Source: Cyanophora paradoxa CCMP329
Lineage: Eukaryota; Plantae; Glaucophyta
NCBI GenBank assembly: GCA_004431415.1
Contig: QPMI01000334.1
Span: 1 to 55,007 of the forward strand
Direction: 5' to 3'
DNA length: 55,007 bases
Positions 1 to 48,896 of the stretch are shown here, one piece after another. The position numbers and the translations under genes were made by a program. Position 1 is the first letter of the stretch; each line of letters starts with the position of its first letter. A model generated the notes under the pieces. That model was given only the letters and a program-made list of their open reading frames with translations. It did no database searches and had not been told where the DNA came from.

Positions 1-3000
1 AGCATCCGCACCGGCAAACGACCGCACCTCGGCCCGAGCGGCCGAAAGCATGATCTCCGAGGCGCCCGGCAGCCCGCGACCACGACCGCGAGGGCGAGTG
101 CGAGGGCGAAGAGCTCGCTGCGCTCGGATCGAAAGAGAAGAAATATGCGCGACAGCAAACGACCGCACCTGCGCCCGAGCGGCCGCAAGCATGAACTCCG
201 AGGCCGATCCCAGCAGCCGCCGGGCCACACGTCCGGAAAGCGGCACGCGCTGCGCTGCGCACGCCGCCGGCGTTACAACAAGATCAAAGGGCGAGCAGTG
301 GAGACAAGAGCGAGCACCTGGCCTGCGGAAGAAGGCGCCGGGCGAACTGGGCGGTGGTGTTCTGCTCGCGGGGACCAGTCACGCCCGCTCCCTGGCCCGC
401 CAGCGAAATGAGGGATTGAATCAAAGGAGAGGAAACGAAAAGCACCTTGCTTCGCCTCCGCAGCCGCCGCCTACGTTCCGCGCGTGCCTGTCAGCGGCAG
501 AACGCCCACTGGCGACAGCCGCGGGAGGAATGGTCAAAAAAGGCAACAAGGAGGTCGACAGCGATGTGTTCGCGAGCGTTCGCGGCCGCAACCGGGCGCC
601 AGCCACCCTGAAGCAGCGCTCTGCGTTTGAAATCAGGCGGGCGACAGGCGGCGAGAGGCGCCAGGGGATGCAAGAGAGTACCTTCGAGCATCGTTCGCGC
701 TGGAAGCCGACGAAGTTCGCTGCGGCGGCAGCAAGTCCGTTCGACCTGGTTTGAAAAGCCGAATCAGAGACGCGGGCAGCGCTGCGAGACCCCGGAGGAG
801 CCAACGAACCGAGCCGCTGTGAGAGCAAAGCGCGTTCATGTGGCAGCCTTCCTTCGAGGCTGCAGCTGGCAGCAAGGAACTTTTGGGTAGCAAGTTTGGG
901 GTACACGACTGTTCGGAAAAGGGGCCACCGCGGCCGGGCCACCGCGGCGGTCGCGCCGCAGTACAGCTTTTCAAGGCCGCCTGGAAGCGATTGCCAACGG
1001 CTCGACCTGGCCCTCGGTCCGGAGCGCCTCCCGCTGCGGCACCTTGGCGCGTGCTCGCAGCACGCAGTGCGAGGCAGCTACAAGCACGTGAGCTTGTAAC
1101 CATGGGTCCAGCTCCCCCGTAGCGTCGTCCCTGCGCCGCGCCGATCCACAGCTAGATCGACCGGGCCCGCAACCCGCGCTGGGTGACTTCGCCGTGCTGG
1201 CCGGTTCTTTGCGTGCCTGTCAGCTCACTTACATCCGCAGTATCTCTACCAGACAGCCCCGCAGTCGATTTGGAGGGTTGAGGTGCACGCCGGCCGGCGG
1301 AGCTCTCTCACATGTTTCGGTGCATAGCGCGTCCCTCTAAGATGCTCACGCAGTGCCTCTGACTCTGGACTGGCCGGGCGCTGCGTGAGCGCGCGGACCG
1401 ACGCAACCTCCCGATCGGCGGTCGCCTCGGGTGCGCCTGCCAAGCACAGCATTTGGCCAGCGACGCGTGAGCGCTTAGCTGACGAGGCCCAGATCGCCAG
1501 GATGGGTGAGCCGCCTCGGATCGTCGCAGTTTGGGAGATATTCTTCTACACTGCCTGGGTGAGCCGGCTGGGCCCGTTCGCGTCGCTGACGGGATGCGTA
1601 CGCGTCCCTGACGGGGCGCGCTGGTAACACAGGATACAGGAAGACGCCGCGTGAAGCCCATGGGCTGGGGTGCGGCGGTTGGCGACGCCGCTCACGGGGC
1701 GGGGCGGATCCGGAGGCGCGGCAGGCGGCCGCGTGAATTCCAGGAAAGGGCGGAGGCGCTTCCTGCGGCGCTGCAGCTCGCGGAGGCGGGCGGGCGGCCG
1801 GAGGCGCTGTGCGTGCGGCGCGGCTCGCCGGGTGGGCAGAGGCGCGGCGGGCGGCCGCGCAGCTCGCCAGGCGGGCCGGGGCGCGGCGGGCGGCGGCGTG
1901 GCTCGCGAGGCGTGACGGAGGCGCGGCAGGAGGCGGAGGCAGCTCGCCGGCCGGGCGGAGGCGCGGCGGGCGGCCGCAAGGCTCCGCCGGGCAGGCAGAG
2001 GCGCGGCGGGCGGCCGCTCGGCTCGCCAGGCGGGCGGGGGCGCGGCGGCGGCGGCGCGGCTCGCGAGGCGTGACGGAGGCGCGGCTCGCGAGGCGTGACG
2101 GAGGCGCGCAGGAGGCGGAGCAGCTCGCTGGGCCGGCGGAGGCGCGGCGGGCGGCCGCGAGGCTCCGCTGGGCGGGCGGAGGCGCCGCGGGCGGCCGCGA
2201 GGCTCCGCTGGGCGGGGCGGAGGCGCGGCGGCGGCAGCGGCGGCTCACGGGGCGGGACGGAGGCGCGGCGGCGGCCGCAAGGCTCGCCAGGCAGGCGGAG
2301 GCGCGGCGGGCGGCCGCGAGGCTCCGCTGGCGGGGCGGAGGCGCGGCGGGCGGCCGCGAGGCTCCGCTTGGCGGGGCGGAGGTGCGGCGGCGGCAGCGGC
2401 GGCTCGCGGGGCGGGACGGAGGCGCGGCAGGAGGCGGAGTCAGCTCGCCGGGCCGGGCGGAGGCGCGGCGGCGGCCGCGAGGCTCCGCCGGGCGGGGCAG
2501 AGGCGCGGCGGCGGCCGCGAGGCTCCGCTGGCGGGGTGGAGGCGCGGCGGGCGGCGCGGTGGCTCGCGGGCGGGACAGAGGCGCGGCGGGCGGCGGCGAG
2601 GCTCCGCTGGGCGGGCGGAGGCGCGGCGGGCGGCCGCGAGGCTCGCCAGGCGGGCCGGGGGCGCGGCGGGCGGCGGCGCGGCTCGCCGGGCGAGACTGTG
2701 GCGCCGCGGGCGGCCGCGCGGCTCACGAGGCGTGGCGGAGGCGCGGCGGGCGGCCGCGCAGCTCGCGGAGCGGGGTGGATGCTTGGGGCGGCGGCAAGGC
2801 TCGCCGGGCGGGGCAGACGCTCGGGTGGATGCTTGGGGCGCGGCAAGGCTCGCCGGCGGGGCAGACGCTCGGCTGGCTGCGGCGCGCCTCGCGGGCCGGG
2901 CGGAGGCGCGGCGGGCGGCGGCGCGGCTCGCTGGGCGGGCGGAGGCGTGGCGGCAGCGGTGGCGGCTCGCCGGGCCGGGTGGAGGTGCGGCAGGCGGTGG

Positions 3001-3260
3001 AGGCAGCTCGCCGGGCCGGCGGAGGCGTGGCGGGCGGCGGCGCGGCTCGTGGGGCGGCCGGAGGCGCGGCGCGCGGCAGCGCGACTCGCCGGGAGGGCCA
3101 GAGGGGCGGCGGGCGGCGGTGCGCAGGCGTGGCGGCCGGCTGCGCGGCTCGCGGGCAGGGCGGAGGCGTGGCGGGTGCCGGCGCGGCTCCTGGGGCGGGG
3201 CGGAGGCTCAGCGTGCAGCGGAACGGCCCGCCGGGCGGGGTGGAGGCGCGGCGGAGGCTC
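1..3260 (+). repeat. Left arm of a large inverted repeat (truncated by window start)
   Basis: 1-55 is the near-exact reverse complement of 6761-6815. Mirror ORFs pair up (421..942- with 5874..6395+; 633..1103- with 5713..6183+; 1246..1452- with 5361..5567+). Confidence 0.97.
1790..3260 (+). repeat. GC-rich degenerate minisatellite (~40 bp unit, e.g. GGCGGAGGCGCGGCGGGCGGCCGCGAGGCTCCGCTGGGCG), G-rich strand
   Basis: Recurrent GGAGGCGCGGCGG and GGCTCGC motifs. The Ala/Arg/Gly ORFs here are artefacts. Confidence 0.92.
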
Positions 3261-4074: not shown

Positions 4075-5020
4075 TTCTCCGCCTCGCAAGCCGCAAGCCG
4101 CGCCGCAGCCCGCCACGCCTCCCCCCCCGCTCCGTGAGCGGCCCAAACCGCCCTCCGCGCCTCCGCCACGCCCCGCGAGCCGCCGCCGCTGCCCACCGCG
4201 CCTCCGCCCCGCCCAGCGGAGCCTCGCGGCCGCCCGCCCCGCCTCCGGCCCGCCTGACGAGCCTTGCGGCCGCCCGCCGCGCCTCCGTCCCGCCCCGTGA
4301 GCCGCCGCCGCCGCCACCGCGCCTCCGCCCCGCCCAGCGGAGCCTCGCAGCCGCCCGCCGCGCCTCCGCCCCGCCCAGCGGAGCCTCGCGGCCGCCCGCC
4401 GCGCCTCCGCCCGGCCCAGCGAGCCGCCCCCGCCGCCCGCCGCGCCTCCGCCCCGCCCAGCGGAGCCTCGCGGCCGCCCGCCGCGCCTCCGCCCCGCCCA
4501 GCGGAGCCTCGCGGCCGCCCGCCGCGCCTCCGGCCCGCCTGGCGAGCTGCCTCCGCCTCCTGCCGCGCCTCCGTCACGCCTCGCGAGCTGCGCCGCCGCC
4601 CGCCGCGCCCCGGCCCGCCTGGCGAGCTGCGCGGCCGCCCGCCGCGCCTCTGCCCCGCCCGGCAGAGCCTCGCGGCCGCCTGCCACGCCTCCGCCCGGCC
4701 CGGCGAGCTGCCTCCGCCTCCTGTCCCGCCTCCGTCACGCCTCGTGAGCTGCGCCGCTGCCCGCCGCGCCCCGGCCCGCCTGGCGAGCCGCGCGGCCCCC
4801 GCCGCGCCTCTGCCCCGCCCGGCGGAGCCTCGCGGCCGCCCGTCGCGCCTCCGCCCGGCCCGGCGAGCTGCCTCCGCCTCCTGCCGCGCCTCCGTCACGC
4901 CTCGCGAGCCGCGCCGCTGCCCGCCGCGCCCCCGGCCCGCCTGGCGAGCTGCGCGGCCGCCCGCCGCGCCTCTGCCCCGCCCGGCGAGCCGCGCCGCCAC
5001 GCACAGCGCCTCCGGCCGCC
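4075..5020 (-). repeat. Same GC-rich minisatellite, inverted, shorter array
   Basis: CCGCCGCGCCTCCG and GCGAGCC motifs, reverse complement of the units in 1790-3260. Confidence 0.92.
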
Positions 5021-6815
5021 CGCCCGCCTCCGCGAGCTGCAGCGCCGCAGCAAGCTCCTCCGCCCTTTCCTGGAATTCACCGGGCCGCCTGCCGCGCCTC
5101 CAGATCCGCCCCGCCCCGCGAGCGGCGTCGCCAACTGCCGCACCCCAGCCCATGGGCTTCACGCGGCGTCTTCCGGTATCCTGTGTTACCGGCGCGCCCT
5201 GTCAGCGACGCGTACGCGTCCCGTCAGCGACGCGAACGGGCCCAGCCGGCTCACCCAGGCAGTGTAGAAGAATGTCTCCCAAACTGCGACGATCCGAGGC
5301 GGCTCACCCATCCTGGCGATCTGGGCCTCGTCAGCTACGCGCTCGCGCGTCGCTGGCCAAATGCTGTGCTTGGCAGGCGCACCCGAGGCGACCGCCGATC
5401 GGGAGGTTGCATCGGTCCGCGCGCTCACGCAGCGCCCGGCCAGTCCAGAGTCAGAGGCACTGCGTGAGCATCTTAGAGGGACGCGCTATGCACCGAAACA
5501 TGTGAGAGAGCTCCGCCGGCCGGCGTGCACCTCAACCCTCCAAATCGACCGCGGGGCTGTCTGGTAGAGATACTGCGGATGTAAGTGAGCTGACAGGCAC
5601 GCAAAGAACCCGGCCAGCACGGCGAAGTCACCCAGCGCGGGGTTGCGGGCCCGGTCGATCTAGCTGTGGATCGGCGCGGCGCAGGGACGACGCTACGGGG
5701 GGAGCTGGACCCATGGTTACAAGCTCACGTGCTTGTAGCTGCCTCGCACTGCGTGCTGCGAGCACGCGCCAAGGTGCCGCAGCGGGAGGCGCTCCGGACC
5801 GAGGGCCAGGTCGAGCCGTTGGCAATCGCTTCCAGGCGGCCTTGAAAAGCTGTACTGCGGCGCGACCGCCGCGGTGGCCCGGCCGCGGTGGCCCCTTTTC
5901 CGAACAGTCGTGTACCCCAAACTTGCTACCCAAAAGTTCCTTGCTGCCAGCTGCAGCCTCGAAGGAAGGCTGCCACGCGAACGCGCTTCGCTCTCACAGC
6001 GGCTCGGTTCGTTGGCTCCTCCAGGGTCTCGCAGCGCTGCCCGCGTCTCTGATTCGGCTTTTCAAACCAGGTCGAACGGACTTGCTGCCGCCGCAGCGAA
6101 CTTCGTCGGCTTCGAGCGCGAACGATGCTCGAAGGTACTCTCTTGCATCCCCTGGCGCCTCTCGCCGCCTGTCGCCCGCCTGATTTCAAACGCAGAGCGC
6201 TGCTTCAGGGTGGCTGGCGCCCGGTTGCGGCCACGAACGCTCGCGAACGCATCGCTGTCGACCTCCTTGTTGCCTTTTTTGACCATTCCTCCCGCGGCTG
6301 TCGCCAGTGGGCGTTCTGCCGCTGACAGGCACGCGCGGAACATAGGCGGCGGCTGCGGAGGCGAAGCAAGGTGCTTTTCGTTTCCTCTCCTTTGATTCAA
6401 TCCCTCATTTCGCTGGCGGGCCAGGGAGCGGGCGTGACTGGTCCCCGCGAGCAGAACACCACCGCCCAGTTCGCCCGGCGCCTTCTTTCGCAGGCCAGGT
6501 GCTCGCTCTTGTCTCCACTGCTTGCCCTTTGATCTTGTTGTAACGCCGGCGGCGTGCGCAGCGCAGCGCGTGCCGCTTTCCGGACGTGTGGCCCGGCGGC
6601 TGCTGGGATCGGCCTCGGAGTTCATGCTTGCGGCCGCTCGGGCGCAGGTGCGGTCGTTTGCTGTCGCGCATATTTCTTCTCTTTCGATCCGAGCGCAGCG
6701 AGCTCTTCACCCTCGCCCTCGCCCTCGCGGTCACGGTCGCGGGCTGCCGGGCGCCTCGGAGATCATGCTTTCGGCCGCTCGGGCCGAGGTGCGGTCGTTT
6801 GCCGGCGCGGATGCT
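4075..6815 (-). repeat. Right arm of the large inverted repeat
   Basis: Reverse complement of 1-~1800 plus a shorter version of the GC minisatellite, with scattered substitutions only. Confidence 0.97.
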
Positions 6816-9645: not shown

Positions 9646-9748
9646 GAACGCTCAGCCTTTTCAAGAAGAAGAAGAGGTTTCAACAGATGACTAACCTACA
9701 CGAAAAGGGCTGATCATGAGCTACACGGTTCTTGTTCTTGAAAAAAGA
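9646..9748 (+). repeat. ~100 bp direct repeat, copy 1
   Basis: GAACGCTCAGCCTTTTCAAG...GTTCTTGAAAAAAGA is near-identical to 15776-15876. Confidence 0.95.
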
Positions 9749-12435: not shown

Positions 12436-13529
12436 TCAGGCGAACACCATATAGTTGGCGGTGTCGGTGCAAAGGGCGTAGCAGGAGATGGAGTCGATGA
12501 GCCACTTGGAGGTGACGATGGGTGCGGTCTTGAAGAGCTCCTGTACTTGCAATTGGGGCCCCAGCTGGAAGGGCCGCAGCAGCTCCTCGGTATCCACAGC
12601 GCCCTCAGCCCGCACCGTTTCCCGGGACCGTACAATGTAAGCAGCCATCACTGCCGTTTGCGCCGAGTGGCATAGGTCCCCGGGGCATTGACACTGCAGT
12701 ATGCAGCCCGTGGCATAGGTCTCATTGCCTGCAAGATGCAGGACTGAGCCACCCGCGCCCTCAATTAGTTCGACGAGGCTCTTCCACGGGGGTTCGTTCT
12801 CCTTGTTGACCAGGTCTTCGAACGCGCCCCACAAGCAGAACAGAAGCCCGTCGAAGAGCCGCGGCCGCTGCGCCCTGTGTGAGGCAGGCGCGGAGCGGCG
12901 GTGGCGCGGAGCGGACCCCGGCGACCCGATCGGCACGGGAGCGGGCAGGGGCGTCGGTCTGCTGCTTGACGCTGTCGCCCAGCAGCTGGTAGGACTCCTC
13001 GGGCTTCCAGCAGTTCTCCTTGAGGCTTGCCCGGACCCCTGCGGCGCCGCGCCGTGTCGGCGGAGGCGGGGGGGCTAGGGCGGGGCAGGGTGCACAGCCA
13101 TAAGAGACGACGTGGATGCCGCGGGCGACGCCATTGAGGTACCCCGCGGTGCGCGTGCAGAGGCCATCGCGTATCTCGCGCGCCACTAGGTGCGTCACAC
13201 CCTCACTCCACGCTTCAGTCAGCACCGCCCCGCCCAGCTTCGCCACCGCCCGCTTCAGCAAGCTCTGCCGGCGCGGCATGAGCGTCAAGGAATGGGACCG
13301 AGGTGTGCACTCGGGGTGGCGGCACCATCTTGTTCGTGTGAACGGTGCTGGCGAAGATTTTGCGAGTGACGGGTGCAGGGTCCGAGCGCTGGCCTATGTT
13401 GACGGCATGTGTTGAAAAGGGAACTGGGATGGGGGGGGGCGGATGCATGCTTACACTCATGCTTAGGCCTTTTCTTCGAGATGTCGCTGTCACCCTGTAC
13501 TCCGGCCCGCTTTGCCTCGCCCTTGCCAT
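12436..13529 (-). CDS. Tandem BRCT-repeat protein (BRCA1/BARD1-type C-terminus)
   Basis: BRCT1: KLGGAVLTEAWSEGVTHLV...CTRTAGYLNGVARGIHVVSY...VRASLKENCWKPEESY. BRCT2: PRLFDGLLFCLWGAF...LVELIEGAGGSVL...PIVTSKWLIDSISCY. The 5' end is uncertain and may join 13600-15459. Confidence 0.88.
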
Positions 13530-15775: not shown

Positions 15776-15876
15776 GAACGCTCAGCCTTTTCAAGAAAGA
15801 AGAGGTTTCAACAGATGACTAACCTACACGAAAAGGGCTGATCATGAGCTACACGGTTCTTGTTCTTGAAAAAAGA
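15776..15876 (+). repeat. ~100 bp direct repeat, copy 2
   Basis: Matches 9646-9748 and abuts the 698 bp repeat. Confidence 0.95.
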
Positions 15877-15877
15877 T

Positions 15878-16875
15878 TGCCGCGCATTATTTCGCAGGGC
15901 GAGTCGCCATAATTTTTGGAGGGCTTTTTGGGGCCTTCCCGCGCTCCAGGGCGGGCGAGTGGAAGCCTGGCAGCCGGTAGTCACGTTCAGACCCTATCTG
16001 AGCCGCTACTGAATGACTCGCATCCGTCGGAATTGGCGCCAGAGAGGCACGGGCGGATTCGGAATCGGCTCTCAAAATTGATCCCGGGAAGAACCCCATT
16101 AGGGAGTCGTTCTCCCCCGGCGCAGCGCCCGGGCGCCGTAAGCTTCGAGACAAATACTCTGCATGTACATCCAAGGGCACTGAAATTGTTTCAGGGCGCT
16201 CGTAGGTGCCACTAAGTCATTAACATTTGATGAAAGGTGCAGACTCATGATCACGTGCAAAAAATTGCAAGCTCGCCGCGCCAAGCTTAGAGGCACCAAT
16301 GAGCCTGTCGGAACGTCAGATTCGGATTCCTCGCCTTCAAAATGGGCGGGGTGCAAAATGTGGGTCAGTCGCGGGCCGGGACGACGCGGCGGCATCAGGT
16401 AGAGGGCGCTCTTGGAGCCTGCCAGCCTGCCCCCGAAGGGCCTAATCGGCAAATACCACCAAGGAAAGCATCTTATCCGACAAGTTAGATCCGGGCGTGG
16501 GGGCGGCCCCAGGGGTTCTCGAGGGTGCCGGATTTGATTCCAAGGTCGTCCAAGGCCGAAAGTCAGCCCGTAGCGCGCCGCGCATTATTTCGCAGGGCGA
16601 GTCGCCATAATTTTTGGAGGGCTTTTTGGGGCCTTCCCGCGCTCCAGGGCGGGCGAGTGGAAGCCCGGCAAGCGGTAGTCACGTTCAGACCCTATCTGAG
16701 CCGCTACTGAATGACTCGCATCCGTCGGAATTGGCGCCAGAGAGGCACGGGTGGATTCGGAATCGGCTCTCAAAATTGATCCCGGGAAGAACCCCATTAG
16801 GGAGTCGTTCTCCCCCGGCACAGCGCCCGGGCGCCGTAAGCTTCGAGACAAATACTCTGCATGTACATGTACATC
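15878..16875 (+). repeat. Tandem repeat, 698 bp period (~1.4 copies), same family as the palindrome spacer
   Basis: GCCGCGCATTAT..TCGCAGGGCGAGTCGCC at ~15879 and ~16577. Duplicate ORFs 15887 and 16585. Confidence 0.95.
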
Positions 16876-16906
16876 CGAGAGCACTGAAAAAACATCGAGG
16901 GCAATC

Positions 16907-19720
16907 CTACATCCGTGTGTTTGGAGAGGCGCCCTCGGAGTTGACCTTGAGGTTGTTCCCCAGCGTCAGCACGATGCAGTATCTGCCGGAAAAGGGTAGG
17001 CCCGGAGTGATCATGAGCTTGCGAGGCGCCGCTGCGGCCGCTGCGGCGGCCACGGGGCGAGCCCAGCGCACCGCCCCTCCGTGTCGTCGTCCTCCACCAC
17101 GCCGTGCTTCAGGAAGTGGCCCTGCCGAAAGACAAAGCGTGGGCCGCCGCCGACCTCCCCGGACGGAGCCAGAGGCGTGGCCGTGCGTGGGTGCGCACCC
17201 GAATGAAAACGACGTCGCCATGGCGGAGCTCGACGGAGATGCCGATCGCTGGGAAAAGGAGGCGGTGCAGGCGCTGGTCGCAGTCGCCGTCGGGGTGGAA
17301 GTAGATGAGAGCCGCGTACCCCTCTCGCGCATCGTTCTCGTCGCAGTGCGGATCCGTAATCCTGCGCCGGGGGAAAACGTCGGCAGCTTGTGGGCCGACC
17401 GGGGCCGGACAGGGGTACGGAGGGGCGGAGGTCGGTGGCGGGGGGCGGCTCACTTGTCCGGCCCGTTCATCCACTGCATCGCCCAGAAACCTGCACACGC
17501 ACGGATGAGGGGGAGCCCGGCCGCGCCCCCCGGCCCCGCCACCCCCCGAGGGCGGCCCGGCGGCGCACCGTAGTTGTACGGCTGCTGCTCGAGCAGCCGC
17601 AAGCTGATCTGGGCCATCTGGCAGGCGGCCCTCAGGTTAACAATGCTGAAGGCCGCGATGAGGTACTCCAGCAGCCCCGCGAGGTACCAGTTGAAGAGGT
17701 GCAGGCGCCGGTTCGCGTTCGTATCCCGCCCAAACTGCTTGTTGATAACCACCTGAGGTGCGCGTGAGCGCGGGCTTTCTGGCGCGCGGGGGCTGGGGGT
17801 CGGAAATCGCGGTGGGCAACGGGCGGGCGCACCGGCGTCGGGACCGTGGCGCTGAGGCGCTGGCAGCCCGTGGTGACCCGATCGCCGCGCCCCCCCTCCT
17901 GCTCCTCCGTGCCGCGCCCGCGCCCCCCCTTCTTCTTCTTCTTGGGCTTGGGCTTCTCTTCGGCCTGCGCGAGCCAGCCCTCGCGCTCGAGCTCCGCCAG
18001 CTTGGCCCGCATGACGTCGAGGCTGCCCGTCTCCAGTGCCACCTTGGCGGCCTCGTCCGCAGCGTCCAGCAGCACCTGATCCTGCACGCGTGACCGACCC
18101 ACTCCATCAGCATCGCGTCCGCCCGGCGGCGGGGACTGCGGGGTAGCGGCCGGGCAGAGGCGGGGGAGGAGGGCGCGGGGGCGGCGCACCAGCTCGGCGT
18201 TCTCGTGCGGCGTCCCCTTGGAAGCAAAGGGCATCGCCACCGAGCCGCAGGCAACGACGGCCGCGATGCGCTTGATGGCGATGCCCTCCGCATCCCAGAA
18301 GAGGTCGGGCAGGTGGGCGGCGGCAAGCTCGCCGCCGAGGACGAGGCGAGTGAACGTCCCGCGCCCCATCACCGCGTCGTGCTTCCGCTCCTCCCTCCCC
18401 GGCAAGCCGGGCGGGAGGGGCTCCAGGCCGTGGCAGAGGGCGCCCTGCGTGCCGGGAGCTCGACGGGGGCGCGCGTGGGGCGCGCGGAGGGCGTGCGGGG
18501 GGGCGGGCAGGACGGACCTGGGCCCGCAGGATCTCTTGGATGAAGCGCGTGTCCACCTCGCCGCCGCCGGGGAGGTTGCAGCTGAGCACGAGCGTCTGCG
18601 GGGGCGACAAGGCGCGCTTTGCCACCACGACCGTGTGCAGGGGCCCCTGCGGGTTGTCGAGAAAGGCCCCTTGCAGGGCGCACAGCGCCCACTCGGCGAC
18701 GGGGCGCGGCTCGAGCCTCTGCCCCGACCGCAGCTGCAGCTCGGAGCCGTAGAGCTCGGCCTCGCGCGCCGGGGGCCCGAGCATCCCCGGGGGTACGATC
18801 CCGCGAGGCAGCTGCGGAGAGGGAGGCGCGTTCATGCCGGGGCGGCAGCGGGCGGGCAAGAGGGGCCGTCTCGCACGTAGATCGTCTTGCCGTCCCAGCG
18901 GTGGGCCCCGAAGGACGGGAACCCGTAGGTGTACCGCGCCAGGAGTGCAGCCTTGGCGAACGGATCTGCGGCAGGGCGTAGGGCGGGCTGCATCGCTGCG
19001 AGCGCGGGGTGAGGAGGGGCAGGCGGACTCTTTGTGTAGAGGGGGCACGCCGGGCCCGGGAGCGCGTTTGACGCGCGCCTCTGCCCGCCGACCGCCAGCC
19101 CCGCCGCGCGTTTCTCGTTGCGCTGCCTCTCGGCCTCAGCGCGCCGCGCCGCCGCCGCCGGGTCGGCCGCGAGCGCCTCTGCCGCGGCGGCGCACAGGGC
19201 CGCGTCGCCCGCGCCGTCTGCCGACGCGGCGGCGGCCCCGGGCGGCTCCTGCGGCAGCTCCTGCTGCCGACGCTCGCCCCTGCGCGGGCGGACGCGCCGC
19301 GGGGCCGCCTCCGCCTCTTCCCGGCCCGGCCGACCGCCGGGGCCGGGGCCTGCGCAGCGCCGGACGGCTCCGGCTCCCCGGCCAAGGCCGCCTGCGCGTT
19401 CTCGCGCATCCACTTCTGCAAGGCCTGCGAGGCAATGCCGCGGAGCCTGGCGGCCGCCTTTCTCGCAGCCTTGGTAGCCTTGGCCAGCTCCGTCAGCCGG
19501 ATCGACTCCAGCCCCGTGCGCACAAGCATGCCGACGCACGAGCCGCCGGGCCCGCCGCCCGGCATGATCTTCGGACGTGAGCTTTACCTGCGGATTCAAA
19601 GGCGAGGCGTTGGCGCGGGCGGCCGCAGGGCTTGAGCGAGTGGCGGCGAGCTTTCGATATCGGTCGCGTGGCGCGTGGACCGCTCCGCGCACCTCTTCTC
19701 CGCCGCACCTAGAGCCCTAG
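16907..19720 (-). CDS. TET/JBP-like 2-oxoglutarate/Fe(II) dioxygenase (catalytic domain ~16907-17760) with a long GC-rich N-terminal region
   Basis: In-phase splicing gives ...YNYG-FWAMQWMNGPDK-ITDPHCDENDAREGYAALIYFH...LLFPAIGISVELRHGDVVFIR-GHFLKHGVVEDDDTEGR-YCIVLTL. This supplies HxD (17340-17348), the distal His (17104-17106) and the 2OG-binding Arg. Upstream exon connectivity and start are uncertain. Confidence 0.8.
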
Positions 19721-23304: not shown

Positions 23305-24446
23305 TTCTGATGCACAATGATGCGCAGCTCTATCGCTGACAAGCGGGCAGTGTTCTTTCGAGAATCAGGCTGGAGCACGTGCAATCGATCTGTCCTTCTT
23401 GGGGCAACTTACTCAGCTGGTGTCGCTGGAGCTTACCTTCGTCCCTGGGACTATTCTGGAGCAGCTCGAGCTGCTCCAGCCTCGCCTTCGTTGCCTCCAT
23501 CTCGTCGGGTACGGCGTAGACCCTGAGGACCATATTGCTTTTGCCGAAGTCATCACCGGCTTCACATTGCTAGAGGCAAGGGCACCCCTAGCCTTGAATT
23601 AAGCAGGTTGCCTTGACCTAGCCTTGAATTAATCTTAATCGCAGGTTCTAAAGCTCGAGTTCAGTAACTTCTCGTTCCTGCCGTTCCTAGAATGGAGATC
23701 CTTCAAGAATGTCCACACATTGCTTCTGGGCTCCACTGGCTGCAATTGCAGCCCTTTCTCGGAACATTTGCTCATGGTTCGGGCCATCCTGTCGTTGATG
23801 TGCCCCCCCCCCCCCTCTCTTCTAATTCGACTGCAGGAAATTTCACTGTACCTGGGGCGGCTGCGGGATCTGAGCCTGTCTGGAAGTGCTTTCGAGATGC
23901 CTCTCCCATTGCACCAGGAAACAGTTGACCGCCTCAAAAACCGCCACCTCCGCCGCCTTCGGGCAGCAGTTGTGGACAAGTTCAACGAGGAGCGCAATCA
24001 TCAGCGGCACTCCAGCCTTCGCCTCACTCATCCCCCTCGATATCCAGAATTTCACGAAGTGCTGCAGGTTCGTGTCCTGATATCATGGGACCCCATCGTG
24101 TTCAATTAGACTTGACCCTGATCAGGGCACGGAGGCTCTTCTCGAACTCAAAATTGAGCAACCACACCCCTTCGTCAAAGCTTCTTCTCGTTACCGCAGA
24201 TATCCACGGACAGAAGCATACACATATCGCATATCTGCCAATGCAGCAGCAGCGGCAGCGGTGGCGGCGAAGGAGGAAAGAAATGCGGACCTCATGTCTC
24301 CCAGTATGCCCCTCCCGTCCTCCTCTGGCCCTCCTGTGGAGCCCCCCGCTCCGCCCCTAGTGCTCCCCATGTCTGCCCCCTCGGCCCGCCCCACTCGCCC
24401 ATACAGGCCTCCGGGGGGGCCTGTTTACCCGGCCCCCGAGATGTAA
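21873..24446 (+). CDS. F-box/LRR protein with Pro-rich tail
   Basis: F-box INALPDELLVGIL...SAVCQHWRNLV. LRR-like segments FPHLHTLRL, LTWLEHLSL, LTQLVSLEL, LRCLHLV, LRDLSLSG. In-phase introns, e.g. 22435-22495 and ~24068-24125. Confidence 0.85.
23249..23301. repeat. (CT)n microsatellite in an intron
   Basis: Pure CT run. Confidence 0.98.
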
Positions 24447-25180
24447 CACTTCTGGGCTCCACTGGCTGCAATTGCAGCCCTTTCTCGGAACATTTGCCCA
24501 TGGTGCGGGCCATCCTGTCGTTGATGTGCCCCCCCCCCCCCCCCTCTCTTCTAATTCGACTGCAGGAAATTTCACTGTACCTGGGGCGGCTGCGGGATCT
24601 GACCCTGTCTGGAAGTGCTTTCGAGATGCCTCTCCCATTGCACCAGGAAACAGTTGACCGCCTCAAAAACCGCCACCTCCGCCGCCTTCGGGCAGCAGTT
24701 GTGGACAAGTTCAACGAGGAGCGCAATCGTCAGCGGCACTCCAGCCTTCGCCTCACTCATCCCCCTCGATATCCAGAATTTCACGAAGTGCTGCAGGTTC
24801 GTGTCCTGATATCATGGGACCCCATTGTGTTCAATTAGACTTGACCCTGATCAGGGCACGGAGGCTCTTCTCGAACTCAAAATTGAGCAACCACACCCCT
24901 TCGTCAAAGCTTCTTCTCGTTACCGCAGATATCCACGGACAGAAGCATACACATATCGCATATCTGCCAATGCAGCAGCAGCGGCAGCGGTGGCGGCGAA
25001 GGAGGAAAGAAATGCGGACCTCATGTCTCCCAGTATGCCCCTCCCGTCCTCCTCTGGCCCTCCTGTGGAGCCCCCCGCTCCGCCTCTAGTGCTCCCCATG
25101 TCTGCCCCCTCGGCCCGCCCCACTCGCCCATACAGGCCTCCGGGGGGGCCTGTTTACCCGGCCCCCGAGATGTAACACTT
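23723..25180 (+). repeat. ~729 bp tandem duplication of the 3' end of the F-box/LRR gene
   Basis: 23723-24451 is repeated at 24449-25180 with a CTT junction microhomology. Stops at 24446 and 25175. Confidence 0.96.
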
Positions 25181-25522: not shown

Positions 25523-27130
25523 TCAGTATTCTTGCAGTATTCCTCTATCTATTCTGATCTCTCTCGTGTGCTCTGTGATCTTCTTATCCTTGAGCTCTCT
25601 ACAGTATTCTTCTATCCGCTCTGTGCAAGGTCGAATTCGAATCCGGTAGAAGGAAGGGCATTCAAGTGCATCAAGGAAGGGCATTACAGGGAATGTGCTG
25701 GAACTCATGGAAAGGAGATCGTGATGGGAACCGGCTGTGAGCGGCTCAGCCTGAGAATGAGAACACAGGCGTGCATTGCTTGGGCTGCGCACATCGGAAT
25801 CCCAGTCCGCACGCCGGACACCGTAGTCCCAGAAGATCTCACGACCCTTCGGAATGTCCGTGGCGGCATAGAATGCGAGATGGTACTGCCCGTTGGGAAG
25901 CTTGATGATCCTGTCAAGTGCAAGAGGATAGAACCACTGGAGCCATGCACGAGGAAATGATGCATGCACCGCTGACGTGTGTTTGGGCACTGAGAGTGGT
26001 TTACATACTTGAAGGGCCTGTCGTTGTACAGATCCGAGGCTGGATTCAATCTGAAGCAAGTTTTGAGAATCAAAGCGAATCATCAGGAGGCACACACAAG
26101 GCACACGCAAGTTCGAAAGAAGCAGGAAATTCAAACATGAAGAAGATGCCCTCCTCCTCGTGCTTCTTGAATAGGGCATCAATTCTAGCCGCTCCGACTA
26201 CCGCCTCTCCAGGAAACAAGCCGAGCAGCTGCAGCAAAACTCAGACACAGTCAAGCAGCAGCAGCATGACGTGAGGGAAACACAGTCAAGACCTCGTCTC
26301 TCTTAAAAGAACGGGAGGCGAACACAGATATCTCGGTCTTGGATCTTTGAAGTTTAGCGTCCTCAGGCATGTTGGAGGGAAAGGCCTCCACAAGTCGGAC
26401 GCAAAGGTCCCGCTCCTGTTTCTTGGCGAGGGCCACCACGGACATGCTAACTGGCTGTGGCTTCTTCCAGCTCTCGTCCTACTCAACCTGATTAATAGCC
26501 AGTTGACCGACAAATCTCATTGAGAAGCACCTGCAGCTCCTCATTTGGGCGAAGCTTTTTGGCTCGGAGCCGTCCCCGCGATGGACGCTGAGAAGCTTGT
26601 TCAGGGCCTTTGAAAGTTTGCAGAGGTGTACGACATACAGACCACTGCGACTTCCTCTGGCTTGCACGAGTTCTCGAATTCCTCCACGAGCGTTCGGCAC
26701 CGCTTCAAGTGATGACTGGGTTCCCACGTATTCTTCTTCTTGGTGTAGCCCTTCCATTTTACAAGGTACTTCTTCACGCCCTGTAGTCGGAATGAGCAAG
26801 GTCTATCGGCAAGCGAAGGCCGCTTTGCGAACATCGACAATTTTCAAGTCCACGATCCGCTCGACCTTGTACCAGCCGCGCTTCCGCTTGCTCGCTTGAG
26901 CCACAGCGGAAAGCCCCTGCGGTGGCTGCAGCTTGCGCTTGGCACGACAGCCCTGCGGGTCCGTGCGTGAGCGTGCAGGCCCCTTAGTGGGCGCCGCCTT
27001 GATGGGCTGCGGCGCACTGATTCGACAGGGTTACGAAGAGCGTGTTCATGTTCTACGGACGCTGCCGGTCCGGTTGCTGCCAGACGCTTAGAATCAGAAG
27101 GAGGCGGCGAGCAAGCGCGAGCAAGTAAAA
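25523..27130 (-). CDS. Chromodomain + SET-domain protein (putative histone lysine methyltransferase)
   Basis: Chromo (~26670-26875): WYKVERIVD...GVKKYLVKWKGYTKKKNTWEPSHHLKRCRTLVEEFE. SET: SVFASRSFKRDEVL...FKYVNHSQCPN...LAFYAATDIPKGREIFWDYG. The start may lie in or beyond the 399 bp array. Confidence 0.9.
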
Positions 27131-27391
27131 GCACCGCGTTTGATGCTAGGCTTCAGCACGATTGCCGCGGAACCCGCGGCAAGGCTCAGGAGTCTGGAGC
27201 CAGGGGCTCAGGACGACGAGCTGCGCTGGGGGTGGGGTACGCAAAATCGTTTCAAGCTGTGACGGGCCAGGCAGCAAGCAGCAAGCCACGAGACGAGTGG
27301 CTGCGCGAGCAGCTGCTCTTACGAGCTCAACATGGTCAGTACGCATGCACACACACACGCATGGTATAGAGCGCAGACTGACGGCCGCAGC

Positions 27392-28770
27392 AGAACTCTC
27401 GCAGACCGACGGGCTTCGGGAGCCCGTTCGAGTTCCCCCGGAGAGCCCTTCCGGTCTCAGAGGTGAGAGCTGCATCTCGATACTGGCTCTGCTGCAGGCG
27501 GCCCAGTCCCGTGGCAGAAGTTTCAGGAACGCGATTCCAACTATCCCCCTCGTCCCCAAGAGAGTGCTGCTCTGCAAACGCCTGGGCCCCTGGCTGCTTC
27601 ACGGGGCAACGCGGTCCGTGCGCTCGACACACGTTCAAGCTGGTCTCTGATGTCCTTCCAGGAATCCCCGAACCCCACCACTGTGGCGGCAAGTACTGAC
27701 CTGCATTCTGTTCTCGTCCTCCGTGCTAATCGAGCCGATGAATGCAGCTTCCAGCTTGGGATGCTCGTGCACTCAGAACCTCGTCCCGTCCGAACTCTAG
27801 CAGACCGACGGGCTTCGGGAGCCCGTTCGAGTTCCCCCGGAGAGCCCTTCCGGTCTCAGAGGTGAGAGCTGCATCTCGATACTGGCTCTGCTGCAGGCGG
27901 CCCAGTCCCGTGGCAGAAGTTTCAGGAACGCGATTCCAACTATCCCCCTCGTCCCCAAGAGAGTGCTTCTCTGCAAACGCCTGGGCCCCTGGCTGCTTCA
28001 CGGGGCAATGCGGTCCGTGCGCTCGACGCACGTTCAAGCTGGTCTCTGATGTCCATCCAGGAATCCCCGAACCCCACCACTGTGGCGGCAAGTACTGACC
28101 TGCATTCTGTTCTCGTCCTCCGTGCTAATCGAGCCGATGAATGCAGCTTCCAGCTTGGGATGCTCGTGCACTCAGAACCTCGTCCCGTCAGAACTCTAGC
28201 AGACCGACGGGCTTCGGGAGCCCGTTCGAGTTCCCCCGGAGAGCCCTCCCGGTCTCAGAGGTGAGAGCTGCATCTCGATGCTGGCTCTGCTGCAGGCGAC
28301 CCAGTCCCGTGGCAGAAATTTCTGGAACGCGATTCCAACTATCCCCCTCGTCCCCAAGAGAGTGCTTCTCTGCAAACGCCTGGGCCCCTGGCTGCTTCAC
28401 GGGGCAATGCGGTCCGTGCGCTCGACGCACGTTCAAGCTGGTCTCTGATGTCCTTCCAGGAATCCCCGAACCCCACCACTGTGGCGGCAAGTACTGACCT
28501 GCATTCTGTTCTCGTCCTCCGTGCTAATCGAGCCGATGAATGCAGCTTCCAGCTTGGGATGTTCGTGCACTCAGAACCTCGTCCCGTCAGAACTCTAGCA
28601 GACCGACGGGCTTCGGGAGCCCGTTCAAGCTCCCCCGGAGAGCCCTCCCGGTCTCAGAGGTGAGAGCTGCATCTCGATGCTGGCTCTGCTGCAGGCGACC
28701 CAGTCCCGTGGCAGAAGTTTCAGGAACGCGATTCCAACTATCCCCCTCGTCCCCAAGAGAGTGCTTCTCC
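27392..28770. repeat. 399 bp tandem repeat, ~3.5 copies
   Basis: GAACTCT.GCAGACCGACGGGCTTCGGGAGCC at ~27392, 27791, 28190 and 28589. ORFs repeat every 399 bp. Confidence 0.97.
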
Positions 28771-40530: not shown

Positions 40531-43500
40531 GCCTTAGGCAGATGACCCACCCACCAGCAAATCACTCAGTCGAAGGCCCCAGGTTTCTGATCCGCCACAA
40601 AAAAAAAGAAGGATGCACCCCAAATCTCTACGGGGGGATATGCACAAGGCGATAGCCTTAGGCAGATGACCCACCCACGAGCAAGTCACTCAGTCGAAGG
40701 CCCCAGGTTTCCAATCTGTGGCAAAATAGAAGAAAGATGCACCCCAAATCTCTCTCGAGGAACATGCACAAGGCGCTAGCCTCAGGCAGATGACCCACCC
40801 TCCAGCAAGTCACTCAGTCGAAGGCCCCAGGATTCCAATCTGTGGCAAAATAGAAGAAGGATGACCCCAAATCTCTATGGGGGAATATGCACAAGGCGCT
40901 AGCCTTAGGCAGATGACCCACCCACCAGCAAGTCACTCAGTTGAAGGCCCCAGGATAAGGATCTGCCAGAAAATAGAAGAAAGATGCACCCCAAATCTCT
41001 CTGGGGGAATATGCACAAGGCGCTAGCCTTCGGCAGATGACCCACCCACCAGCAAGTCACTCAGTTGAAGGCCCCAGGTTTCCGATCTGCCACAAAATAG
41101 AAGAAAGATGCACCCCAAATCTCTCTGGGGGGATATGCATCAGGCACTAGTCATAGGCAGATGACCCACCCACCAGCAAGTCACTCAGTCAAATGCCCGG
41201 TTTTTGAATCTGCCACAAAATAGAAGAAAGATGCACCCCAAATCTCTCTGGGGGAATATGCACAAGGCGCTAGCCTCAGAAAGATGACCCACCCACCACC
41301 AAGTCACTCAGTCGAACGCCCCAGGTTTCCGATCTGCCACAAAAAAGAAGAAGGATGCACCCCAAATCTCTCTGGGGGAATATGCACAAGGCGCTAGCCT
41401 AAGGAAGATGAACCCACTCACCAGCAAGCCACTCAGTCAAAGGCCCCAGGTTTCTGATCCGCCACAAAATAAAAGAAGGATGCACCCAAAATCTCTCTGG
41501 GGGAATATGCATCAGGCGCTAGCCTTAGGCAGATGACCCACCCACCAGCAAGCCACTCACTCAAAGGCCCCAGGTTTCCGATCTGCCACAAAATAAAAGA
41601 AAGATGCACCCCAAATCTTTCTGGGGGGATATGCATCAGGCACTAGTCATAGGCAGATGACCCACCCACCAGCAAATCACTCAGTCGAAGGCCCCAGGAT
41701 AAGGATCTGCCAGAGAAAAGAAGAAAGATGCACCCCAAATCTCTCTGGGGGAATCTGCACAAGGCGCTAGCCTCAGAAAGATGACCCACCCACCACCAAG
41801 TCACTCAGTCGAACGCCCCAGGTTTCCGATCTGCCACAAAAAAGAAGAAGGATGCACCCAAAATCTCTCTGGGGGAATATGCACAAGGCGCTAGCCTTAG
41901 GCAGATGACCCACCCACCAGCAAATCACTCAGTCGAAGGCCCCAGGTTTCTGATCTGCCACAAAATAAAAGAAAGATGCACCCCAAATCTTTCTGGGGGG
42001 ATATGCATCAGGCGCTAGCCTTAGGCAGATGACCCACCCACCAGCAAGCCACTCAGTCAAAGGCCCCAGGTTTCCGATCTGCCACAAAATAGAAGAAGGA
42101 TGCACCCCAAATCTCTCTGGGGGATATGCATCAGGCGCTAGCCTTAAGCAGATGACCCACCCTCCAGCAAGTCACTCAGTCAAAGGCCCCAGGTTTCCGA
42201 TCTGTGGCAAAATAGAAGAAAGATGCACCCCAAATCTCTATGGGGAATATGCACAAGGCGCTAGCCTTAGGCAGATGACCCACCCACGAGCAAGTCACAC
42301 AGTCGAAGGCCCCAGGTTTCTGATCTGCCACAAAATAAAAGAAAGATGCACCCCAAATCTTCTGGGGGGATATGCATCAGGCGCTAGCCTTAGGCAGATG
42401 ACCCACCCACCAGCAAGCCACTCAGTCAAAGGCCCCAGGTTTCCGATCTGCCACAAAATAGAAGAAAGATGCACCCCAAATCTCTCTGGGGGGATATGCA
42501 TCAGGCACTAGTCATAGGCAGATGACCCACCCACCAGCAAGTCACTCAGTAGAAGGCTCCAGGTTTCCAATCTGCCAGAAAAAAGAAGGATGCACCCCAA
42601 ATCTCTCTGGGGGAATCTGCACAAGGCGCTAGCCTCAGAAAGATGACCCACCCACCACCAAGTCACTCAGTCGAACGCCCCAGGTTTCCGATCTGCCACA
42701 AAAAAGAAGAAGGATGCACCCCAAATCTCTCTGGGGGAATATGCACAAGGCGCTAGCCTAAGGAAGATGAACCCACCCACCAGCAAGCCACTCAGTCAAA
42801 GGCCCCAGGTTTCTGATCCGCCACAAAATAAAAGAAGGATGCACCCAAAATCTCTCTGGGGGAATATGCATCAGGCGCTAGCCTTAGGCAGATGACCCAC
42901 CCACCAGCAAGCCACTCAGTCAAAGGCCCCAGGTTTCCGATCTGCCACAAAATAAAAGAAAGATGCACCCCAAATGTTTCTGGGGGGATATGCATCAGGC
43001 ACTAGTCATAAGCAGATGACCCACCCACCAGCAAATCACTCAGTCAAAGGCCCCAGGATAAGGATCTGCCAGAGAAAAGAAGAAAGATGCACCCCAAATC
43101 TCTCTGGGGGAATCTGCACAAGGCGCTAGCCTCAGAAAGATGACACACCCACCACCAAGTCACTCAGTCGAACGCCCCAGGTTTCCGATCTGCCACAAAA
43201 AAGAAGAAGGATGCACCCAAAATCTCTCTGGGGGAATATGCACAAGGCGCTAGCCTCAGGCAGATGACCCACCCACCAGCAAGTCACTCAGTTGAAGGCC
43301 CCAGGATAAGGATCTGCCAGAGAAAAGAAGAAAGATGCACCCCAAATCTCTCTGGGGGAATCTGCACAAGGCGCTAGCCTCAGAAAGATGACCCACCCAC
43401 CACCAAGTCACTCAGTCGAACGCCCCAGGTTTCCGATCTGCCACAAAAAAGAAGAAGGATGCACCCAAAATCTCTCTGGGGGAATATGCACAAGGCGCTA

Positions 43501-46500
43501 GCCTTAGGCAGATGACCCACCCACCAGCAAGTCACTCAGTTGAAGGCCCCAGGATAAGGATCTGCCAGAGAAAAGAAGAAAGATGCACCCCAAATCTCTC
43601 TGGGGGAATCTGCACAAGGCGCTAGCCTCAGAAAGATGACCCACCCACCACCAAGTCACTCAGTCGAACGCCCCAGGTTTCCAATCTGCCACAAAAAAGA
43701 AGAAGGATGCACCCAAAATCTCTCTGGGGGAATATGCACAAGGCGCTAGCCTTAGGCAGATGACCCACCCACCAGCAAATCACTCAGTCGAAGGCCCCAG
43801 GTTTCTGATCTGCCACAAAATAAAAGAAAGATGCACCCCAAATCTTTCTGGGGGGATATGCATCAGGCGCTAGCCTTAGGCAGATGACCCACCCACCAGC
43901 AAGCCACTCAGTCAAAGGCCCCAGGTTTCCGATCTGCCACAAAATAGAAGAAGGATGCACCCCAAATCTCTCTGGGGGATATGCATCAGGCGCTAGCCTT
44001 AAGCAGATGACCCACCCTCCAGCAAGTCACTCAGTCAAAGGCCCCAGGTTTCCGATCTGTGGCAAAATAGAAGAAAGATGCACCCCAAATCTCTATGGGG
44101 GAATATGCACAAGGCGCTAGCCTTAGGCAGATGACCCACCCACGAGCAAGTCACACAGTCGAAGGCCCCAGGTTTCTGATCTGCCACAAAATAAAAGAAA
44201 GATGCACCCCAAATCTTCTGGGGGGATATGCATCAGGCGCTAGCCTTAGGCAGATGACCCACCCACCAGCAAGCCACTCAGTCAAAGGCCCCAGGTTTCC
44301 GATCTGCCACAAAATAGAAGAAAGATGCACCCCAAATCTCTCTGGGGGGATATGCATCAGGCACTAGTCATAGGCAGATGACCCACCCACCAGCAAGTCA
44401 CTCAGTAGAAGGCTCCAGGTTTCCAATCTGCCAGAAAAAAGAAGGATGCACCCCAAATCTCTCGGGGGGAATCTGCACAAGGCGCTAGCCTCAGAAAGAT
44501 GACCCACCCACCACCAAGTCACTCAGTCGAACGCCCCAGGTTTCCGATCTGCCACAAAAAAGAAGAAGGATGCACCCCAAATCTCTCTGGGGGAATATGC
44601 ACAAGGCGCTAGCCTAAGGAAGATGAACCCACCCACCAGCAAGCCACTCAGTCAAAGGCCCCAGGTTTCTGATCCGCCACAAAATAAAAGAAGGATGCAC
44701 CCAAAATCTCTCTGGGGGAATATGCATCAGGCGCTAGCCTTAGGCAGATGACCCACCCACCAGCAAGCCACTCAGTCAAAGGCCCCAGGTTTCCGATCTG
44801 CCACAAAATAAAAGAAAGATGCACCCCAAATGTTTCTGGGGGGATATGCATCAGGCACTAGTCATAGGCAGATGACCCACCCACCAGCAAATCACTCAGT
44901 CAAAGGCCCCAGGATAAGGATCTGCCAGAGAAAAGAAGAAAGATGCACCCCAAATCTCTCTGGGGGAATCTGCACAAGGCGCTAGCCTCAGAAAGATGAC
45001 CCACCCACCACCAAGTCACTCAGTCGAACGCCCCAGGTTTCCGATCTGCCACAAAAAAGAAGAAGGATGCACCCAAAATCTCTCTGGGGGAATATGCACA
45101 AGGCGCTAGCCTCAGGCAGATGACCCACCCACCAGCAAGTCACTCAGTTGAAGGCCCCAGGATAAGGATCTGCCAGAGAAAAGAAGAAAGATGCACCCCA
45201 AATCTCTCTGGGGGAATCTGCACAAGGCGCTAGCCTCAGAAAGATGACCCACCCACCACCAAGTCACTCAGTCGAACGCCCCAGGTTTCCGATCTGCCAC
45301 AAAAAGAAGAAGGATGCACCCCAAATCTCTCTGGGGGAATATGCACAAGGCGCTAGCCTTAGGCAGATGACCCACCCACCAGCAAGCCACTCAGTCAAAG
45401 GCCCCAGGTTTCCGATCTGCCACAAAATAGAAGAAGGATGCACCCCAAATCTCTCTGGGGGGATATGCATCAGGCGCTAGCCTTAAGCAGATGACCCACC
45501 CTCCAGCAAGTCACTCAGTCAAAGGCCCCAGGTTTCCGATCTGTGGCAAAATAGAAGAAAGATGCACCCCAAATCTCTATGGGGGAATATGCACAAGGCG
45601 CTAGCCTTAGGCAGATGACCCACCCACGAGCAAGTCACTCAGTCAAAGGCCCCAGGTTTCTGATCTGCCCCAAAATAAAAGAAAGATGCACCCCAAATCT
45701 TCTGGGGGGATATGCATCAGGCGCTAGCCTTAGGCAGATGACCCACCCACCAGCAAGCCACTCAGTCAAAGGCCCCAGGTTTCCGATCTGCCACAAAATA
45801 GAAGAAAGATGCACCCCAAATCTCTCTGGGGGGATATGCATCAGGCACTAGTCATAGGCAGATGACCCACCCACCAGCAAGTCACTCAGTAGAAGGCTCC
45901 AGGTTTCCAATCTGCCAGAAAAAAGAAGAAAGATGCACCCCAAATCTCTCTGGGGGAATATGCACAAGGCGCTAGCCTTAGACAGATGACCCACCCACCA
46001 CCAAGTCACTCAGTCGAACGTCCCAGGTTTCCGATCTGCCACAAAAAAGAAGAAGGATGCACCCCAAATCTCTCTGGGGGAATATGCACAAGGCGCTAGC
46101 CTAAGGAAGATGAACCCACCCACCAGCAAGCCACTGAGTCAAAGGCCCCAGGTTTCTGATCCGCCACAAAATAAAAGAAGGATAATACCCATATCTCTCT
46201 GGGGGAACATGCACAAGGTGCTAGCCTTAGGCAGATGACCCACCCACCAGCAAATCACTCAGTCGAAGGCCCCAGGTTTCCGATCTGCCACAAAATAGAA
46301 GAAAGATGCACCCCAAATCTCTCTGGGGGGATATGCATCAGGCGCTAGCCTTAGGCAGATGACCCACCCTCCAGCAAGTCACTCAGTCAAAGGCCCCAGG
46401 TTTCGGATCTGTGGCAAAATAGAAGAAAGATGCACCCCAAATCTCTCTGGGGGAATATGCACAAGGCGCTAGCATTAGGCAGATGAGCCACCCACCAGCA

Positions 46501-47380: not shown

Positions 47381-47460
47381 GGATGTTTCTTTTCTAGTCC
47401 CGGACGTGGGGTCGGCCCCCCCCACCCCCTGATTTCCCACTGCAGCCGCGGGGGGAGCGT

Positions 47461-48890: not shown

Positions 48891-48896
48891 CAAACA

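Follow-up and report, generated by a model that had tools for sequence, protein, structure and literature searches.

An annotated but unnamed 11-exon gene of Cyanophora paradoxa encodes a putative, divergent TET/JBP-like dioxygenase

The minus strand of a 55,007-nt contig of Cyanophora paradoxa CCMP329 nuclear DNA (QPMI01000334.1; this whole stretch is called the window here) carries an 11-exon gene between positions 19529 and 16907, which encodes a protein of 626 amino acids. The locus is a real, intact gene that is already annotated in public data, though unnamed. Its last five exons probably encode a β-helix domain of about 175 residues that uses Fe(II) and 2-oxoglutarate (2OG), has TET/JBP as its nearest family and would act on a flipped-out methylated base. 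Sequence comparisons suggest a Cyanophora-specific family of divergent TET/JBP-like dioxygenases with a complete set of iron and 2OG motifs. An original prediction, made from the letters of this DNA, had described a cryptic TET/JBP-like dioxygenase split across five exons, with a threonine in place of the usual aromatic residue in the final strand and possibly a new base modification. Its observation is confirmed, and its interpretation is partly supported. Our literature search returned no paper connecting Cyanophora or glaucophytes with TET/JBP enzymes.

Gene structure

When exon 9 alone (54 amino acids) was used as the query, an exhaustive phmmer search returned a public protein of 626 amino acids with 100% identity over the exon. 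This entry (EukProt EP00741 Cyanophora paradoxa P008852, source name tig00001387_g8569.t1) has no functional name. Exact mapping of tig00001387_g8569.t1 to the window gave zero mismatches across the 11 exons, from 19529 to 16907. The public models of C. paradoxa were made with BRAKER1/Augustus, trained on RNA-seq (PMC6704402). The five exons recognized in the original prediction (17752–16907) are exons 7–11. The in-phase GT..AG junctions proposed between them are those of the public model, and every peptide that it quoted was located in its place on the minus strand. The gene is not cryptic as had been claimed, since it is publicly annotated and the five exons are only its tail.

All ten introns run from GT to CAG, are in phase and measure 54–92 nt, with a donor that is mostly GTGCGC. 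Introns 8, 9 and 10 are 92, 77 and 89 nt long, none divisible by 3, and unspliced read-through meets a TGA directly 3′ of exon 8; the catalytic residues therefore share one frame only through splicing. The claim that no single open reading frame (ORF) shows the pattern holds for the distal histidine and the arginine, for which splicing is needed, but not for the HxD motif and the RHGD strand, which lie together in one 129-residue ORF (17109–17498). Periodicity in the GC content of third codon positions (GC3), above 0.9, tracks the exon frames and extends upstream to about 19.5 kb. An unspliced ORF from an independent Logan contig (P0007) has similarity to ORFs of the window that is confined to the equivalents of exons 7, 8 and 9, with breaks or gaps at the predicted introns; for exon 7, the similarity stops where the exon ends. 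The C. paradoxa genome has 67.6% GC, 9.2 introns per gene and a mean intron length of 86 bp (PMC6704402). Measured against these averages, 11 exons and introns of 54–92 nt are typical. The exons are as follows.

Exon 1, 19335..19529, minus strand: start methionine of the public model, residues 1–65; from exact mapping and GC3 periodicity.
Exon 2, 19029..19263, minus strand: alanine-rich and of low complexity; from exact mapping; intron 1 before it is 71 nt, GT..AG.
Exon 3, 18877..18965, minus strand: start of the paralogue-conserved block at about residue 145; from mapping and paralogue alignment.
Exon 4, 18518..18811, minus strand: part of the conserved N-terminal module; from mapping and paralogue alignment.
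Exon 5, 18190..18444, minus strand: conserved N-terminal module with invariant R330, A333 and A341; from mapping and paralogue alignment.
Exon 6, 17833..18135, minus strand: predicted helical linker and a lysine-rich stretch; from mapping and paralogue alignment.
Exon 7, 17569..17752, minus strand: two predicted helices ahead of the β core, with an invariant N-R-x-L-H-L-x-N motif.
Exon 8, 17454..17490, minus strand: GFWAMQWMNGPD and 2 nt of the K531 codon; donor GTGAGC.
Exon 9, 17199..17361, minus strand: ITDPHCDEND to LRHGDVVFIR, with H536 at 17348–17346, D538 at 17342–17340 and the invariant RHGD strand.
Exon 10, 17072..17121, minus strand: GHFLKHGVV, with the distal histidine H591 at 17106–17104 in an H-G-V motif, and the first two bases of the R602 codon.
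Exon 11, 16907..16982, minus strand: last base of the R602 codon and the final strand YCIVLT, with T608 (16966–16964) at Arg+6; stop codon TAG at 16909–16907.

The R602 codon is split CG/A by the last intron (17071–16983). One junction of the public model is doubtful. The first 54 nt of its exon 6 (18135–18082) encode residues 401–418, and because these 18 residues are missing from every paralogue, this segment is probably intron. An in-frame CAG acceptor is present at 18084–18082, and tig00001387_g8569.t1 probably uses the wrong acceptor for intron 5.

A family of paralogues in Cyanophora

A word search of EukProt with residues 150–626 identified nine further C. paradoxa models with 41–88% identity, of which tig00020801_g13930 is the one at 88%. 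The exhaustive search added P0006 and P0007, and a domain profile added the fragments P0019 and P0020. The total is about 13 EukProt gene models, all from C. paradoxa, and tig00001387_g8569.t1 thus has at least 12 paralogues. Conservation spans from about residue 145 to the C-terminus and covers, in order, a module of about 250 residues, a helical and lysine-rich linker and the oxygenase domain. The N-terminal module had zero Pfam matches, and its ESM Atlas lead to Tet_JBP scores just 0.79.

H536 and D538 are retained in all paralogues except the degenerate P0008. H591, R602 and T608 are invariant in every model that contains the exon. Such retention of the motifs across 12 paralogues is more than chance.

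As queries of word-index searches, the domain alignment and the outgroup protein P0011 yielded just further Cyanophora fragments and three metagenomic proteins, and tblastn against phage genomes gave no significant match. The outgroup proteins (P0011, P0012, P0021, P0022 and P0023, from ENA, Logan and JGI assemblies) have the strand before the distal histidine in common with the Cyanophora domain. They carry HTD, HLD or a degenerate HAQ at the HxD site, a lysine in place of the 2OG arginine and a tyrosine at +7. Four other proteins from the exhaustive search (P0002, P0003, P0009 and P0010) are repetitive and were discarded as spurious.

Catalytic motifs and family assignment

The motifs that mark TET proteins are HxD, Hxs (where s is a small residue) and Rx5a (PMC4150289). 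The iron-binding HxD is present as H536-C-D538, with HRD in the other full-length paralogues, and aligns with H229/D231 of NgTET1, the Tet-like dioxygenase of Naegleria. The Hxs motif is H591-G-V593; its histidine aligns with NgTET1 H279, and both the histidine and the valine are invariant in the paralogues covering the exon. R602 is invariant and lies 11 residues past the distal histidine, within the Tet_JBP match at about position 156 of the profile; it would be the residue that binds the C5 carboxylate of 2OG. The complete HxD...H triad and the 2OG arginine of the original prediction were thus all found, as H536, D538, H591 and R602.

Pfam Tet_JBP (PF12851) matched all nine of the paralogue domains searched, with a best E value of 2.6e-5 and coverage of profile positions 84–160 of 164. 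For tig00001387_g8569.t1 itself, the E value was 0.015 at full length (14.9 bits) and 0.0019 with the domain alone (17.9 bits). Among the nine domains, no other 2OG oxygenase family of Pfam, including 2OG-FeII_Oxy_3 and 2OG-FeII_Oxy_2, appeared at E values up to 10. The comparison of Tet_JBP with other 2OG families proposed in the original prediction therefore gave Tet_JBP as the best match. Weak matches to MLVIN_C in the last strands of eight of the nine domains were treated as noise. Searches of Pfam and of PDB sequences with individual ORF pieces were uninformative.

A profile of the nine domains was run against 177,635 distinct PDB sequences. The sole matches were to the Naegleria Tet-like dioxygenase (E values of 0.24 and 1.1), and PHD, AlkB and many other 2OG oxygenases within that set were unmatched. 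The profile of the full-length alignment had zero matches in the PDB. By language-model neighbourhood in the ESM Atlas, Tet_JBP accounts for 25 of the 30 nearest clusters, with a top score of 0.96 and 211 features in common, and the nearest are Tet_JBP clusters of phages and Basidiomycota.

An AF2 model of residues 445–626 (predicted local distance difference test score, pLDDT, of 58.5) consists of two helices and seven strands arranged as a generic double-stranded β-helix. The model of residues 140–626 built with 12 paralogues had a pLDDT of 39.9 and was unusable. Structure comparison of the 445–626 model with Foldseek and VIA-align gave matches to 2OG oxygenases and cupins in general, PHD2 among them with a template modelling (TM) score of 0.41. 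The Z scores were 8.2 for the prolyl hydroxylase 6f0w, 8.1 for ALKBH7 and 8.0 for ALKBH6. CcTet matched with a root-mean-square deviation of 3.1 and 22% identity, and NgTET1 with a Z score of 6.6 and 18% identity. The structure prediction suggested earlier thus recovered a β-helix of the 2OG type, but one on which PHD2 and the ALKBH proteins score at least as highly as CcTet and NgTET1.

The base pocket

The aromatic residue at Arg+6 stacks under the flipped 5-methylcytosine (5mC) in TET2 (Tyr1902/Arg1896), NgTET1 (Phe295/Arg289) and CMD1, the TET homologue of Chlamydomonas (Phe416/Arg410) (PMC7854593). In the Cyanophora protein this position is T608, and threonine is found in 9/9 aligned paralogue domains; 10/12 paralogues cover the strand, and the models of the other two end earlier. 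The replacement of the usual aromatic residue by threonine is thus real as originally described, but it is shared across the family and is not special to this locus. Some paralogues have a phenylalanine at +5, which on a β-strand would face the opposite side. A second arginine (Arg1261 in TET2, Arg224 in NgTET1) binds the C1 carboxylate of 2OG and caps the base.

Because the stacking aromatic is replaced by threonine, a base pocket altered relative to TET2, NgTET1 and CMD1 is plausible from the alignment. The original prediction went further, to an altered substrate or product and possibly a new base modification. That step is not sustained: it is pure inference from the threonine, and mutation of the stacking residue in CMD1 (F416A) lowers activity only about eightfold (PMC7854593). 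The threonine is a family trait that rests on sequence register and is no demonstration of a new product; that a new base modification arises is possible but unsupported. We regard it as a long shot, and very unlikely, that a family-wide remodelled pocket, with threonine for the aromatic and a variable residue where the second arginine weakly aligns, leads to a base or product other than 5-hydroxymethyl-, 5-formyl- or 5-carboxylcytosine or 5-hydroxymethyluracil, and so to an undescribed modified base in glaucophyte DNA.

Proposed function

In the mechanism that we propose, H536, D538 and H591 would hold Fe(II) and R602 would hold the C5 carboxylate of 2OG. The enzyme would oxidize the methyl group of a flipped-out base, most likely 5mC, in a base pocket that, with threonine for the stacking aromatic, may be unlike those of TET2, NgTET1 and CMD1. 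The conserved N-terminal module and the lysine-rich linker may help to bind DNA or chromatin. We infer the activity on 5mC. C. paradoxa has DNMT1 and DNMT3 and 32% mCpG (methylated CpG); its repeats are methylated, and 21% of its genes are both methylated and silent (PMC12344493). The presumed substrate is therefore abundant. The paper on methylation in C. paradoxa mentions no Cyanophora TET (PMC12344493).

Genomic surroundings

The gene is a GC-rich island (71–74% GC) amid repeats. A 292-nt direct repeat (15879–16170 and 16577–16868; 98% identity at a distance of 698 nt) ends 39 nt past the stop codon, and an 80-nt stretch beside it (15797–15876) recurs with 100% identity 6.1 kb away at 9669–9748; together they may be an unclassified dispersed repeat. 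A 399-nt tandem repeat (3.5 copies, 97–98% identity) and a duplicated unit of about 729 nt (98–99%), located at 27391–28769 and 23723–24831, are young local duplications. The last 14.5 kb of the window (40531–55007) is a satellite with a unit of 121–124 nt, higher-order periods of 245–248 and 366 nt, one inverted block (48897–49526) and a strongly positive AT skew. Its observed/expected CpG ratio is 0.2–0.5, against about 1.0 in the gene, which is consistent with long-term methylation of the repeat. Two minisatellite arrays (1791–3117 and 4096–5022) reach 87% GC, have a unit of about 40 nt and produce spurious long ORFs on either strand. The two consensus units look like mutual reverse complements, which would make the arrays an inverted pair around 3.1–4.1 kb.

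Among neighbouring coding sequences, ORF pieces at 12436–13288 on the minus strand contain a BRCT domain (E value of 8.9e-6, above the Pfam cut-off) with GC3 bias, and the BRCT ORF itself (12761–13288) is probably an exon of the gene next to the dioxygenase gene on its downstream side. Upstream, some 6 kb from the dioxygenase gene, an ORF at 25523–26182 on the minus strand has a weak match to the C-terminal part of a SET domain (E value of 6e-4). Pfam scans of the longer neighbouring ORFs gave weak F-box matches, and Rfam had zero matches in the window. On the plus strand, a 319-residue ORF (16614–17573) without a family match lies antisense to exons 8–11. It is most likely a by-product of high GC, and long bidirectional ORFs are a known trait of the C. 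paradoxa genome (PMC6704402).

Weighing the interpretation

Several findings weigh against a TET/JBP enzyme that acts on DNA. Every Tet_JBP score lies under the Pfam gathering score of 34.9 bits, and the matches of the domain profile in the PDB are not significant alone. The poor structural model fits prolyl hydroxylases and AlkB homologues at least as well as it fits TETs (Z scores of 8.2 versus 6.6), so the fold does not discriminate between the families. The aromatic residue of Rx5a is absent, with T608 at a position whose register comes from sequence alignment only, and the equivalent of NgTET1 Arg224 is K531, with K, R or T in the paralogues, in a region of weak alignment. Outside Cyanophora, the only relatives found form a small metagenomic group (hhalign probability of 94%) with a variable HxD, and the depth of conservation is therefore low. 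Lastly, this copy has four private changes (R217C, R537C at the middle residue of HxD, R566L and L570I) at columns that are otherwise invariant in nine other full-length paralogues. As for the low profile scores, Mycobacterium phage Cooper gp2, which we take to be a classical phage member of TET/JBP, scored 26.6 bits against Tet_JBP and is likewise under the Pfam cut-off. When the family was compared by hhalign with Cooper gp2 as a single sequence, only the strand preceding the distal histidine aligned, at a probability of 1.8%. The TET/JBP pattern of the original prediction thus stands in that Tet_JBP is the nearest profile family, and fails to reach the Pfam cut-off in any score. We consider it highly probable that the domain is a TET/JBP-like enzyme, although formal Pfam membership is not reached.

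That there is no gene at all, and that the motifs are chance matches in GC-rich DNA rich in long ORFs, has next to no probability. Such DNA in Cyanophora does yield spurious long ORFs on both strands, the 319-residue antisense ORF being an example, but the exons match the public model exactly and the similarity of the unspliced copy is confined to them. The chance reading is refuted by the conservation of the motifs in the 12 paralogues. A more serious alternative is a real 2OG/Fe(II) dioxygenase with a substrate other than a DNA base (a protein side chain, RNA or a small molecule), whose likeness to TET/JBP would reflect the common β-helix core. The prolyl hydroxylases and ALKBH6/7 at the top of the structural searches, the first shape row of the Atlas (2OG-FeII_Oxy_3), the loss of the base-stacking aromatic and the sub-threshold Tet_JBP scores all speak for it. 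However, the structural model is too poor for ranking families, and no protein- or metabolite-modifying 2OG family of Pfam was matched at E values up to 10, whereas Tet_JBP was matched by all nine domains. Other 2OG families are abundant in the PDB, yet the profile retrieves just NgTET1, and the language-model neighbours are again mostly Tet_JBP (25 of 30). We judge a substrate other than DNA unlikely.

The other two alternatives concern this copy and its origin. It is quite unlikely that the gene is a duplicate that has been silenced or is decaying among repeats and would make no active enzyme even if the family is active. Against decay, the 626 codons contain zero frameshifts or stops, the ten splice sites and all catalytic ligands are intact, exon GC3 stays above 0.9 and the observed/expected CpG ratio across the gene is 1.04, with no depletion. 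The four private substitutions, none of which occurs in the two closest paralogues, point the other way; two of them are Arg-to-Cys changes that a single C-to-T mutation at a CpG could produce. The middle residue of HxD nevertheless varies across the superfamily. The position of the gene between tandem repeats and satellites would also suit silencing, as would the proportion of C. paradoxa genes that are methylated and silent (21%; PMC12344493). Those repeat-rich flanks, together with an expansion in a single lineage whose copies are up to 88% identical, also speak for the idea that the gene travels as cargo in a mobile element, like the genes of the fungal and Chlamydomonas TET/JBP expansions, and serves to free that element of silencing methylation. 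In fungi, the carriage of TET/JBP genes by transposons is well established (PMC12730594). However, the repeat scan of the window found no terminal inverted or long direct repeats that bracket the gene, and among the ORFs up to about 10 kb away, Pfam scans found no domain of a transposase, helicase or recombinase, although short exons could hide such genes. Mobile cargo is in our estimate rather improbable. The reading that we prefer is an intact gene for a TET/JBP-like dioxygenase.

Significance

With about 13 genes, this set of TET-like oxygenases is a concrete candidate to remove 5mC actively, or to hypermodify it, in glaucophytes. Green plants, to which the glaucophytes are a sister lineage, rely instead on glycosylases. 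That the whole family has lost the base-stacking aromatic poses a simple, testable structure–function question. The public models of C. paradoxa also contain unnamed chromatin enzymes that standard Pfam thresholds miss. If the base or product were indeed altered, the case would parallel that of CMD1, which revealed 5-glycerylmethylcytosine in Chlamydomonas.

Comparison with known systems

NgTET1 from Naegleria gruberi (PDB 4lt5, 5cg8) is the only PDB protein that the family profile retrieved, and this similarity is not statistically significant (E value of 0.24). The two share the aligned HxD and distal histidine (H229/D231/H279), a compact single-domain size of the oxygenase, a G-D-V-x-F strand ahead of the distal histidine and an arginine 10–11 residues past it. 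In contrast, NgTET1 has Phe295 at Arg289+6 and Arg224 five residues before HxD, where the Cyanophora protein has Thr608 and Lys531, and it lacks the extra conserved N-terminal module of about 250 residues and the lysine-rich linker.

Cooper gp2 shares the HRD, L-x-HGV and R-x-S/C-x-V motifs of the Cyanophora family, at similar spacing, and also the sub-threshold Pfam score; unlike the Cyanophora domain, it has a tyrosine at Arg+6. The HIF and collagen prolyl hydroxylases and the AlkB homologues share the double-stranded β-helix and, by raw structural score, match the low-confidence model best (Z scores of 8.0–8.2, TM score of 0.41). They show zero sequence-profile similarity, and their identity in the structural alignments is 11–14%, versus 18–22% for NgTET1 and CcTet.

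The fungal TET/JBP genes (PU, AG and PE types) have likewise undergone lineage-specific expansion. They sit inside defined DNA transposons (PMC12730594), whereas no element boundaries or transposase were found at the Cyanophora locus. CMD1 was not matched in the sequence searches with the Cyanophora family. It is nevertheless similar in kind: an algal, lineage-expanded, divergent TET/JBP-like protein with an intact HxD...H triad. CMD1 adds a glyceryl group derived from vitamin C to 5mC, which illustrates that small changes near the co-substrate or base pocket can alter the chemistry (PMC7854593). The changes differ between the two. CMD1 keeps Phe416 but has an Arg410 oriented away from the site and a Trp358 that blocks 2OG, whereas the Cyanophora family keeps the arginine and loses the aromatic residue.

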